The notes beneath the pieces were generated by a model that was given only the letters and a program-made list of their open reading frames with translations, searched no databases and was not told the origin of the DNA. DNA of 61,064 bases, counting the filler, from Bipalium vagum (lineage: Eukaryota), in assembly GCA_037834085.1 (NCBI GenBank). It is 3 parts of 3 records of this genome, joined end to end, with 100 filler letters (N's around TTAATTAATTAA, not from the genome) between each part and the next. Parts side by side here need not be neighbours in the genome. Positions count along the whole stretch, not along the records: positions 40,100 to 61,064 come from JBBMKC010243926.1; 2 more parts are not named here. One strand, 5' to 3'. The translations under genes and the position numbers were made by a program. This document shows positions 52,201-58,200 of the stretch, in pieces (position 1 is the stretch's first letter; the number at the start of each line of letters is the position of its first letter).

Positions 52201-55200
52201 TCTCTAACGAATCCGTTGAGTTATATTGACAGAAATAACAATTTCCAAACGTTTCCAGCTGCTGTTCTCGTTCTGTTTCGGTACTCATAGAAAGGCTGTT
52301 TTAATTTAATCATATCATGCTTATAGATCTGCGACTGGAGAAGCTTGGCAGGAGATAATGCTCAGTTGTACTGGAACCGGTTAGTTATCCGTTATGGAAT
52401 AAACCCATACATTTTACTATGATATTTCATTCTTAATTGGTTTGGATTTGTATGAATTTTTCTGATTCAATTGTAAAAATGATTCAATTATTAAAAATTT
52501 TCAAATTTCTTTAATAAAAAAATTATAAAGATAGAACATTAACCTTTATATTTGATTAGCATAAGTTTGATGATGTTGAAAGAAATATTTAGCAGTAGTA
52601 ATAATAATAAATAAAGTAAAAAAAATAATAGATTAATAATAATAATAATAATAATAATAATAAATTGAAAATTAAGAAATATTTCATAAACAATTTATGA
52701 AAATTAATTCATTTTGTTTTAAATTTCTTGATCTTTAAGAAGAAAACTTGTTAAGAAAATTTAATATTTTCGAAAAAGAAATTATTCTGAGATTCAGAAC
52801 AATAAACGGTAATCATCACAGATTCAATTTCTTTATATTTTTAGATTTTTCAGGCGCTGAAAATGATTAATATAAAAATGTAATCGTTTTTCGAATCCGT
52901 TTTACGTGATGATATTATATTTTTAATTTTTTGGTACACTTTTATCTCTCTTTAATGTGACAATATTTTCAGACATAAGACGACAGCCACGGCTGTACCA
53001 TAACATGACTAATTAATTATAATTTATAATTAAAATATAAAATAATATTGAAAGGTAATGAAAAAAATTTTTCTGATTAGATTAAGATTTATTCATATTT
53101 ATTCCGATATTTTTACATTTTATTTAACAAAAATAAATAAAGGAACATTAATCTTGGTATAATATTATCCAAAGATTTTGGATTGAATTATTAAATAAAA
53201 ATATAAATGTTATTCTTATAGAAAAAATTCTTCTTAACGCATTCATGTTAGTTGAAAATTAATCGGAGATACCGGGATTCGAACCCGGAACCTTCACATG
53301 CGCATGGGCTTCTCTGACCGCTGAGCTACATCCCCAGAAAATTTTCAATATATCACAACTTATAAATATAAAATTCAGATTAATAATGGATATAATATTA
53401 TAAATAATAATAATAATTAATATAAAAATAAGCGCTTTTATTCGTTATATTTTTTAAAAAATTCTTTAATAAGTACTTTATATAAGGTTTAATATTAATG
53501 ATTTATCTATTTATATTTTGGATCTCATTATATACACGAGTGTGTACAAAGTAAGTATCCGTTTATGGCGCTCAGCAAAAGATATATATGATGTGGAAAA
53601 GGATACCTATAGTGAGGAAAATGAGGAAGATATCTACAAAATTCCAAGAGACTGGAAGTGTTTGTGATCTTTGGAAGTTTGGAGACCATCTATTGTAGAT
53701 GAGAAAATATGCGAAATAAGTCTGAGACATCGCTGAGAACTAAAGCCATAAAAGTTTTTTGCAGTTTTAAAACTGTTCATGTAGTACGAAAAGATCTTCA
53801 ACTTTATCCATATAAAATCCATAAGTTACATGAGGAAGAATATGCTGAAAGAATTGAGATGTGCGAAAGCCTAATTAATGAAGTTGATGATAATCCATCT
53901 TTTTACAAAAGCTAACACCACTTGATTTCTTGATTACAATAATAATATGAATAGAAATGAAGAATTGAATTATCCCATGGTTTGATAAATTTGCTTGAAA
54001 ATTCAAATTTCTGACAGGAAAATTTTAATTTCGTAGATTTCACGCCTCTTGAAGTTAATAGTGTTAAGACTTTAGTCTGTCCAAAAAAAAAACAACGTCT
54101 ACAAAGGAAATTAGGGCTGAATGTTAGACGCCTGTCTCTGTGATTGAACTATTTGAAATAAATATAATATTTCAAAATGAGCCTATTTTGAAGACTCACA
54201 TACACTTTGGCTATTAAATAACGATTCTTAATTTCTATTGAACAATGTGCCGAATTTTTTTGTCTAAATGTGTATAAACAAAGGTTTTTATAATAATTAG
54301 AAATATCTATTAATAAATTTGAACCTATTATTGGAATTAAAAATAACAGATTTAATAACCAATAATGTCATTTATAATTGATTAAATCAAAAATCTTTTC
54401 TCTAAATAATAATTTAATGCTCATAAAGCAACTCAGAAAATCGAGCAGGGTTTTGTGTATTAGATAAGCCTTGATTGTAACTATGACACTTGGGTTAAAG
54501 TCCCTCACTGGTAAGGCAAATGTACAGAAATATTGATATGAATAAATAAAATGTGAATGTATTTTTCTCCAAATGATAATTTTAGAAATATTAAATTTTA
54601 ACTGTTGTATTAATTGCTATAGATGAAAAATCACGTTGTGAAACTGTTGAAAATGTTGAAAATGACGCAAATAAATTTTGTGGATCTTGGGTTGCATATC
54701 CTTATTTCATTTCATTCTATATGATCTGCTCATTTTTGGTAGGATTTTCTGTTTTGTTTACCTTCTAGATGCATGTTTACCGATGGATTGAATAAAAGAG
54801 GCATGAATTTAGTTTTCGGGGTTTTTATCTTTTATTATCAATGTCTATGGTGGACATTTTGCTAATTTCGATAACATCATATCAATGTTTTGCTTTAGTC
54901 ATTTTCTTTTAACTGAAATAAGTATTTTTAAGATTTTACTATATTATTATTAATACTATTATCATAATCAATATTATCATTATTATTAAAGACTTTAATC
55001 ATGATAATTTTTTGGCGAGTAACATTTTCAAAAGCTTTGATAGTTCAGAATAACTTTTCTTTAAAAAGTTTTTTAAAATGTTGTTTTTTTGTTTTTACTG
55101 CCTTATTGGATAACATTAGCGTCTCACCATTGATCTAAGATCTTGAAATGTTTGCTTTTATTTTTTAATTTAAATTTTAATTATTTATTTTATTTATATG

Positions 55201-58200
55201 GTCCATTTGTTTATAAAGTTATTGGATTTAATTTGATTTTTATTTTTGTCATGATTATTTTCGATATGAACAATCAATGTTTTTCTTTTGTTGAAATTAT
55301 CGTGTCACCGAAATCGTCTTAACATTTTGAATGACGAAAATATAAAACTTTGATTTGACAAATAAATCATATAAAGTGATCATAATACAAATGGAAATTG
55401 TAATGGTACGACGTTTTAATGTCCTGACAGGTGTACATCATTGATAAACTTGATAATGTGTAAAAAATCATTATAATCAGTTAAAAATAAATGATGAAAC
55501 CGCAATGATATAAATCTAAAATAATTATTTCCACATGTATAGAGAAGTCACAATGTGATCCAGGCTCAGACACCATTGAAAATGATAAAAATCATAAATG
55601 CGGATCCATAGTCACTTATCCATTCTTTATTTCATTCTATGTGATTTGCTGTTTTGTGGTGAGTTGTTAGGTTTTTATCTGTTGTCTGAGCAATGTACTA
55701 TGTTGTGGAAGTATTTATGATCGGATTTATTGATCGGATTTAATTCCTTTCATTTGTGCATGTTTACTGGCTTTTGTCATGTCTTCACCATTATTATTAT
55801 TTTTTTTATTATTATCATTGGAAATTATTCCAGTATTTATTTTCTTTTGCATTAATAGATTATCAATCTTTTTGTCGCTGTCATTATGGACAATTTTGAT
55901 TACCTGACAAGGGACTGGTCTATTCTTGGACCACACCATCTTGATGAATTTATAACGAGATGGGCCGATTATGACCCCGAGGCAAAGTAAAACCATTTTT
56001 ATTCATGAATTTTATAAGAGTTTTATATTTTTCGTATTCCGTTTATTTATATAATGTTTTGATAATATTTGATTCAAAAATGGATATTTTCTGGCTCGAA
56101 CGAATTTATTTTAGTTTTCTTATATAAAATTAATACGAAAACTTTTAAATTAAGGAAAATATTCATTTATTTCTATTAATAAAAAATTAATATTTGAAGA
56201 TAATATTGGTATAATATAATAATATAATATTTCTGATTAGTAAAATTTTAAATTGTTGGTATTATTTTATTTTATTTCCCTATTATTTTATATTTATTCT
56301 CAGGCAAGGGGTAAAGTTTTTTTCTTAAAAATTATCAGTTTTTTAAAATTTTTAATAATTTTTGAAAGTTTTACTATTTTCTAAATAAAACCAGGTTTTA
56401 ATATTGTTAATTTTTTGATATATAATTTGTTAATGTATATTCAACATTTCAGGAGTGATCATTTTTATATTTACAAAACATCAACTCTTTTATATTATAT
56501 TGTTTCTTTTTCTAAATAGACTCATTCTTAGGTTTCAAGCCAAGACTGGGCTGACTTATATTTCATATAATAATAAAAGTAGCTTTAAAAATAAATCTTC
56601 AGTGTTGTGATCAAATTATTATGTGTACAACTATGACTCCACCGTTTGTCCCATATTTATTTAGTGAAACTGAGGTATTGAAACTATAAAATGGTGTAAA
56701 ACTTAAGAAGGGTAAATATATCTCCTTAACGGTACAACTAAACAAATAAAAAGTTTAGTTCATTTATACATTTAATATATACGTATCCACAAAAAAGTAC
56801 TAAAAGATTATTAAAATTTGTTTCTTGATGAAAAATTACTTCATGATAAATTATTAAATTTCATGACAATAAATAGTTTGATTTAGTTTGATTTGGTTTG
56901 TCATCTGATATTTGTTTGAATTTATTACTATAAATTTTATCAAAAGTGTGGAATTTAATTTGATTTGATATAAACAATAAATAATTCAATTATCTACAAT
57001 ATTTAGTTGTTTTAAAAATTTTCAATTAAACTCTCCTGAAATCACTTATTGAATATCCTTGGAATAATTAGTCAAAATTATAATCTTATCGCAAAAAAGA
57101 AACAAAATGATCAAAAGATAAAGATTTCATTAAAAAAAAAGCCCTTATATTCTCTATTATAGTACCAGGATGGAGGTATACTATGAACCGGTCTCCATAA
57201 ATTTAAATCTTTTTTCTAAGAAAAATCATAATTTCTGACAACATTCTATTGCATTTGCGATTTATTTTTTTTGCCATTTATTTCATGATAGGAAAATTAT
57301 CATTGTGGAATATATTATTATTTCTGTAAGTAGGGAATAGATAAAGAATTTCCCATTTTTGGATTTTAAAATGTCATTTGTCAACATAATTAAAGGAATA
57401 ATTAACATAATTGAAATATAAATTACAGCCTTAAGAAACCCGTTAAAACAGAAGCTGGAACCGAATTTTTGGAAGCAATTTTAATGCAGTTAATTATTCA
57501 TTAAAAAATCATTAAATTCTCAAATCAATTATTTTCTAACAATGCCCAACAAACAAATATGAGCAGTCAGCGTCAATTGACATTTGTAAAGAGTCGGTTT
57601 TTCGCTCAATGTTCCTTAATATTGAACAGCCAGGCTCATATTTTCATTTAATTACCTGATCTAATGATTATTTTTCACAGAAAATTGAGAAATCGTCTAA
57701 ATTTTTTCTATTTTCAATTTTAAAAGATCAAATTAAAAAATTGTTTCCGATAATATTTTAATAAATGATAAAATAAAAATATTTTATCCTGAAGTGTTTT
57801 AAATTTCATGAACTTATTAAATTTAATAATTACTAGTACAATGATCTTTGTTTAAACCCTTCAAGATCATTAATGAATTTAAAAATTGATTAACAGGTAA
57901 ATTCATATTTTAAATTAATAATAAAAAAATATTATATAAGTTTTGAAAGTTTTTTTTAATTTTATCCAAAGTATTTTATTTGTTGTATTCACAAAATTAT
58001 ACCAAAAATTGGTTCATCTTTTAATCGGGTATAATTATATTATTGAATGAAAAGACATTTCGATTTAAGTTGCACATTGAAATAAAAAATCCCCAACTCC
58101 ACTTTCAATATTCCCTTAAAACTGATTATTATTAATACTAATTAGCTTCTAATAATGTTACCATTACATTGTGTCATTTAAGTGACTTTTTTAATTATAT

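Follow-up and report, generated by a model that had tools for sequence, protein, structure and literature searches.

The stretch of Bipalium vagum DNA analyzed here (the window; 61,064 nucleotides (nt), filler included) joins parts of three records of the assembly GCA_037834085.1, the last of which (JBBMKC010243926.1, positions 40100-61064 of the window) carries on its plus strand the latter half of a calcium-channel alpha-1 gene. Within this gene, two exons of 116 nt, here called A and B, stand in tandem and encode two versions of the same part of the channel, namely the extracellular loop between the pore loop and the sixth segment of domain IV (the P-S6 loop, or D4L6) and the first half of that pore-lining segment (IVS6). 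We think it probable from their anatomy and their signature of selection that A and B form a mutually exclusive pair in which both exons are used alternatively.

A tblastn comparison with full-length Cav1 proteins placed exons from IIIS1 through the IQ motif in the piece 40100-61064, which covers domains III and IV and the C-terminus, domains I and II lying outside it. The Pfam Ion_trans model is matched above its cut-off of 25 bits by the IIIS6 exon (28.1 bits) and by the exon for IVS5 and the pore loop (36.9 bits), and GPHH is matched by a single exon with 44.7 bits (cut-off 26.8). Ca_chan_IQ is matched by single exons with 26.4 and 23.2 bits, against a cut-off of 26.7 that is set for the whole protein, and the motif KFYATFLIQ is present. 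The selectivity filter reads TFEGWP in domain III and TGEAWQ in domain IV (the domain I and II members of the EEEE ring lie outside the piece). Compared with the chains of solved structures, the IIIS5 exon ranks Cav1.1, Cav1.2, and Cav1.3 (E 7e-22 to 5e-17) before Cav2 (E 1e-13 to 6e-12) and Cav3 (E 9e-9 or weaker), and exons A and B give the same order. The best full-length matches are Cav1 proteins of flatworms and other invertebrates, with flatworm Cav1 proteins at the top overall (∼66-69% identity) and molluscs barely behind. Based on the Pfam domains, the Cav1-first order of matches, and the TFEGWP and TGEAWQ filters, the gene is by homology a Cav1 (L-type) alpha-1 gene, in agreement with the L-type assignment made in an earlier note on this DNA.

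The exons and introns around IVS6 are as follows.

52120..52283, plus strand: constitutive exon encoding IVS5 and the beginning of the pore loop of domain IV; 68-83% identical to Cav1 proteins by tblastn, Ion_trans 36.9 bits
52327..52379, plus strand: constitutive exon of 53 nt carrying the selectivity filter of domain IV (TGEAWQ); by translation, ends one base (G) into a codon
52380..54622, plus strand: 2243-nt intron before exon A; usual GT...AG ends, very high-copy repeat at ∼53233-53506
54623..54738, plus strand: exon A, 116 nt; D4L6 loop and first half of IVS6, Cys at residues 6 and 20 of 39
54739..55542, plus strand: 804-nt intron between A and B; donor not of the U12 type
55543..55658, plus strand: exon B, 116 nt; D4L6 loop with CDPxSD and first half of IVS6, Cys at residues 5 and 20
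55659..55858, plus strand: 200-nt intron from exon B to the constant exon; donor gtgagt, acceptor ...attaatag
55859..55986, plus strand: constitutive exon encoding the rest of IVS6 (its second half) and the beginning of the EF-hand/GPHH region; 74-88% identity with Cav1 orthologues

Direct reading of the sequence bears out the earlier description of A and B as two intact 116-nt exons of equal phase, with good splice sites and the peptides given there, both of which retain the two cysteines and FISFY. Each exon enters one base into a codon (phase 1) and leaves at a codon boundary (phase 0); A is preceded by ...ctatag and followed by gtagga, and B is preceded by ...gtatag and followed by gtgagt. 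The constant exon downstream ends at 55986 and not at 55987, its donor GT occupying 55987-55988. The two proteins share 21 of 38 aligned residues (55%, E = 8e-15) and the exons are 66% identical as DNA, and their flanking introns have no alignable similarity. In solved Cav1 structures, the only region matched by either exon is the P-S6 loop of domain IV together with the first half of IVS6, corresponding to residues 1337-1371 of rabbit Cav1.1. No other tandem exon copies were found in the piece, the 53-nt filter exon included.

The introns of the gene fall into two sizes, ∼37-50 nt beside 0.8-3.6 kb, and two-sized intron lengths are a known trait of parasitic flatworm genomes. The short class is represented by the following.

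40463-40502, 48938-48983, 51035-51073, 51165-51215, 52283-52327, 58347-58394: short introns, ∼37-50 nt class

The long intron upstream of exon A holds a very high-copy repeat. Word depth in the DNA sequencing run that covers the region (run X1) reaches ∼78,000 (78,477) in the bin 53233-53369 and ∼900 in 53370-53506, with values of 5-200 elsewhere, and contig ends and joints crowd the interval 53233-53506.

Frame logic and splicing of exons A and B

The consequences of including either exon, both, or neither were read by joining the four neighboring exons in a script and translating them locally. The frame is open with A alone and likewise with B alone. When A and B are joined, a stop is met 22 codons into B, and when both are skipped, a stop is met 13 codons into the next exon. 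A productive mRNA must therefore carry either A or B and cannot carry both, since any other combination leaves the frame and soon meets a stop; the earlier note had argued for such a shift, and translation confirms it in each case. Messages with two copies or none would be unproductive and would probably be cleared by nonsense-mediated decay. The simplest mechanism for mutual exclusion would thus be frame incompatibility followed by removal of the unproductive mRNAs, with regulators choosing the exon.

Two other ways of enforcing exclusion were considered and rejected. Steric exclusion fails because the intron between A and B, at 804 nt, is too long, and incompatibility of U2 and U12 splice sites is ruled out by the donor sequences. 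An (AAT)n run at 52632-52663, in the intron before exon A, is complementary to (ATT)-rich runs at 54942-54989 (after A) and 55790-55819 (after B), in a layout that recalls docking and selector sequences; given the low complexity of this region of 26% guanine plus cytosine (GC), the complementarity is probably due to chance.

The choice between A and B is probably set by splicing regulators, for which a UGCAUG-bearing 11-mer common to the two downstream introns is a candidate element, UGCAUG being a binding motif of the Rbfox type.

54770..54780, plus strand: TGCATGTTTAC, candidate Rbfox-type (UGCAUG) intronic element, 32 nt after the exon A donor
55757..55767, plus strand: TGCATGTTTAC, second copy, 99 nt after the exon B donor

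The exact 11-mer occurs twice in the whole window, once 3' of each alternative exon, and a shared word of this kind was reached in 11 of 2000 shuffles. A second exact 11-mer, GGTTTTTATCT, is common to the same two introns, at 54820-54830 and 55670-55680. The two words are not residues of collinear homology, because their order is reversed between the introns.

Selection on the two copies

A codon alignment of A and B gives a proportion of nonsynonymous differences (pN) of 0.25 and of synonymous differences (pS) of 0.74, the latter saturated, from which it follows that the duplication is old. Identity between the exons is 74% at first, 79% at second, and 45% at third codon positions, the last being close to random. 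The spacing between the two cysteines is off by one, B having gained one residue in the loop and lost one at its N-terminus, and both exons remain 116 nt long because these indels offset each other. The GC content of the exons (0.30 in A, 0.345 in B) is higher than that of the flanking introns (0.22-0.28).

We simulated neutral decay starting from exon A under the local base composition, with substitutions only and indels left out, until first and second codon positions had diverged as far as they have between A and B. An open frame was kept in 11-14% of runs, both cysteines in 20-26%, FISFY in 4-6%, and AG together with GT in 29-35%, while all of these features survived jointly in just 0.035-0.12%. 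The contrast between pN and pS, the identities by codon position, the offsetting indels, and the rarity of joint neutral survival make both copies look selected, and the suggestion of the earlier note that both are under selection holds up in this analysis.

The two copies have kept different features. The ancestral CDPxSD loop, common in insects, chordates, and others, is kept by B and lost in A, and the flatworm-type S6 is kept by A, whose S6 half shares 76-86% identity with flatworm Cav1 proteins and has the same 11-residue end as Cav1B of Dugesia japonica. We propose that one 116-nt Cav1 exon was duplicated in tandem long ago and that both copies were retained as coding, in which case the gene could make two channels differing solely in the D4L6 loop and in the outer half of IVS6, the helix that lines the pore. 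In variant A, the loop would be derived and more acidic and S6 conservative and of the flatworm type (FYMICSFL); in variant B, an ancestral-looking CDPxSD loop would be joined to a derived S6 (FYVICCFV).

Counterparts in relatives and competing explanations

Two gene models of Macrostomum lignano in UniRef, A0A1I8IQR8 (P0308) and A0A1I8GUC8 (P0381), have the first half of IVS6 twice in tandem, the two copies being different and read in series. The copy that comes first is of the FYM type (ending FISFYMLCSFL) and the one that follows is of the FYVIC type, which is also the order of A and B. Each copy has two cysteines and FISFY, and copy 2 has CQQ where a near-invariant CGS is expected. By its form, this serial arrangement is a typical misannotation of what would be a mutually exclusive pair. 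A tree of the exons built on 24 columns does not discriminate between shared and independent origin with the Macrostomum copies; exon B and Macrostomum copy 2 are both long branches in it. That the IVS6/D4L6 pair is an ancient flatworm feature, common to B. vagum and Macrostomum, where the M-type copy precedes the V-type copy in both, and that the parasitic Neodermata have lost it, is an idea we hold to be doubtful and advance tentatively. Free-living flatworms would then have two kinds of L-type channel that differ in the outer-pore loop and the upper part of IVS6, hence in permeation, block, or inactivation, and the pair, if this is true, would be the first natural splice switch of a domain-IV pore module in a Cav1 channel.

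Other repeated or variant segments met in the comparison are of different kinds. In Anopheles, an apparent insect pair of D4L6 loops belongs to paralogous genes and not to isoforms, because the proteins are 74-75% identical over their whole length; these Cav1-type paralogues (P0155 vs P0208/P0174 in A. gambiae, P0154 vs P0210 in A. arabiensis) are apparently on one chromosome, the contigs that encode them having equal recorded lengths. The insect Cav1 isoforms seen have one invariant first half of IVS6 common to all. In Taenia, a weak second match, located in the intron (L003, 11855-11896), was dismissed as chance because it lacks the Cys loop and runs into a stop codon. A Globodera pallida model (P0152) repeats the segment from filter to IVS6 with identical sequence, which has the look of an assembly or haplotype artefact. 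In P0283, a mollusc-like Cav1 protein of 2682 residues from MetaClust, the exon that follows the A/B position (...EYDPDA) occurs twice in series at residues ∼1650-1760, with slight differences between the repeats (HLDEFVRLW vs HLVDFVQLW); either some spiralian has a further tandem exon pair, which would encode the second half of IVS6, or the repeat is an artefact of the model or assembly. Trematode Cav1 models (P0284-P0296; Opisthorchis viverrini L001, ∼40087-41799) have an insertion of more than 150 residues in D4L6 before the second cysteine, and D4L6 of Dugesia Cav1B is also long, the length of this loop being highly variable among flatworms.

Several observations weigh against the alternative use of A and B. 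Between the flanking exons, a single IVS6 exon was found at the DNA level in Opisthorchis viverrini, Taenia crassiceps, and Adineta vaga, and none of 80 metagenome and metatranscriptome loci had two separate IVS6-like matches, many of these loci also matching both flanking exons at intron-like distances. The pair is rare among the sequences compared, because the relatives examined mostly carry a single exon, and none of the parasitic flatworms examined has it. The Macrostomum models implausibly read both copies in series, and they show the genomic presence of the copies and not their use. The sequencing run found for the region consists of short DNA contigs, without splice junctions, and no protein fragments matched exon A, extended to 40 amino acids, in a search made with that exon. 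No convincing docking/selector RNA pair was found, just low-complexity (AAT)n/(ATT)n arms. With respect to selection, a test for conservative substitution reached p ∼0.06-0.09 only, exon B is the long branch of the exon tree and clearly the faster-evolving copy, and dN/dS from one sequence pair does not assign the constraint to the A or B branch separately.

The competing explanation that best withstands the data, and which we nonetheless judge somewhat unlikely, is that one copy, more likely B, is a relic of the old duplication that is never or hardly spliced in, leaving a single-form channel. The divergence of B, the long branches of B and of Macrostomum copy 2, the DNA-only run, the lack of exon A protein fragments, and the mostly single-exon relatives all fit a relic, as does the Pfam Ion_trans model, which matches A weakly and B not at all. 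Yet the duplication is old, and B is still open in a 26%-GC context, with both cysteines, CGS, YPxFISFY, its AG and GT, a consensus gtgagt donor, and a length of exactly 116 nt maintained through offsetting indels, a set of features whose joint survival is rare in the neutral simulation. B also holds the CDPxSD that A has lost and is a better match than A to rabbit Cav1.1 (E = 0.0011).

It is improbable that both copies are coding but amount to a recent, lineage-specific oddity, that is, redundant alternative exons with a near-neutral difference. Each of the six residues that differ in the S6 half is a conservative replacement (W/I, A/T, Y/F, M/V, S/C, and L/V), and V, M, and I all occur naturally at the position of rat Cav1.2 M1464 in Cav1 of different phyla, as such redundancy would allow. 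The saturated synonymous sites speak instead for an old duplication, redundant copies are unlikely to last so long, and the loops are strongly different in sequence and charge. An assembly artefact, in which uncollapsed haplotypes or a mis-joined paralogue would leave A and B not neighbors in one gene, is highly improbable: the sole DNA run may be the source of the assembly itself and no single contig of it is shown bridging A and B, but its Logan contigs cover both exons with no differences listed, one exon is duplicated and its neighbors are not, and haplotypes are disfavored because they would be near-identical, flanks included, whereas the copies are 66% identical with unrelated introns and the true artefact in G. 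pallida shows an identical repeat.

Functional consequences and known tandem exon pairs

The earlier note had proposed that the choice between A and B switches residues of the dihydropyridine (DHP) site, Y-M-S in A against Y-V-C in B, and with them the pharmacology of the channel. Using the list of IVS6 residues in Table 1 of PMC2362100, with rat Cav1.2 numbering, exons A and B have, respectively, M and V at the equivalent of M1464, S and C at that of A1467, and L and V at that of L1469. The equivalents of I1460 and Y1463 are the same in both exons, and those of I1470, I1471, and N1472 sit in the constant downstream exon (55859..55986). Three further positions of the outer helix differ between A and B, as do loop sequence and loop charge. 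The proposed differences at M1464 and A1467, with Y1463 unchanged, are thus real, while a switch in DHP pharmacology finds little in its favor. In the exon at 48286-48447, the IIIS5 DHP determinant Gln (rat Q1043, rabbit Cav1.1 Q939; PMC2362100) is Val, and the equivalent of M1161 in IIIS6 is Ile (FFMIN vs FFMMN), so that low DHP sensitivity is predicted with either IVS6 exon. Given the Val in IIIS5, the report that schistosome Cav1 channels are refractory to DHPs (PMC6796685), and the observation that every insect Cav1 seen normally has V at the M1464 position, a DHP switch is unlikely to be the biological point of the pair.

Altered gating, permeation, or inactivation through the D4L6 loop and upper IVS6 would be a more plausible effect, because the DHP angle is weak and because D4L6 swaps in Cav3 change ion passage, altering the passage of Na and Ca in chimeras (PMC7382465, PMC4436565). 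The alpha2delta subunit on Cav1.1 contacts the L5 loops of domains I-III and not D4L6 (PMC7382465). We infer that the likely role of two exons would be to tune, by cell type or stage, how the channel gates and inactivates and/or how ions pass or are blocked at its outer pore. Swapping D4L6 together with outer IVS6 would amount to a chimera experiment made by nature, in a pore region with influence on inactivation, on drug binding, and, in Cav3, on ion preference, and the pair would bear on the odd response of flatworm L-type channels to classical blockers. It also matters for annotation, since an automatic gene model can wrongly read one copy after the other, as the Macrostomum models do.

Mutually exclusive tandem exons are a way in which Cav and Nav genes diversify without gene duplication. 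They are strongly enriched in these genes; the Cav genes of human and fly account for ten independent events, each affecting a different exon (PMC9741552). The mammalian Cav1.2 pairs are in IS6 (8/8a), IIIS2 (21/22), and IVS3 (31/32), as the earlier note had listed them (PMC3596553), and these known Cav1 pairs have clear physiological and medical consequences. A literature search, which was not exhaustive, found no IVS6/D4L6 exon pair in any Cav1, in keeping with the impression of the earlier note that none had been described. A and B are best understood as a new case of a familiar splicing device, located at a site where it is new.

The closest parallel is the 8/8a pair of mammalian Cav1.2 and Cav1.3, which like A and B is a tandem Cav1 pair that swaps a pore-lining S6 segment. 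Its variants, one exon per mRNA, change inactivation and drug sensitivity (PMC3596553). The 8/8a pair lies in domain I, whereas A and B lie in domain IV and also swap the extracellular P-S6 loop, and it is backed by transcript and functional proof, whereas A and B are a pair predicted from sequence. The 21/22 and 31/32 pairs of Cav1.2 share the channel family and the tandem exon substitution with A and B (PMC3596553, PMC9741552) but are in voltage-sensor segments, in contrast to the pore module affected here. Among invertebrates, the tandem exon pairs of Drosophila cacophony and Ca-alpha1D are independent, old, and conserved (PMC9741552, PMC4174434) and concern exons other than A and B. The Macrostomum models A0A1I8IQR8 and A0A1I8GUC8, known only as computed models, affect the same segment in the same M-then-V order. 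Finally, exons 12a/12b of invertebrate Cav3, in the D2L5 turret, provide alternative cysteine-containing extracellular pore loops, like A and B (PMC7382465, PMC4436565). The D4L6 loop that varies in Cav3 is the one encoded by the first half of A and B, but in Cav3 the spliced loop is D2L5, and the variation in D4L6 is between genes and species and not produced by splicing. Unlike Cav3, Cav1 has an EEEE filter, and both predicted forms of the B. vagum channel would be expected to stay Ca-selective.

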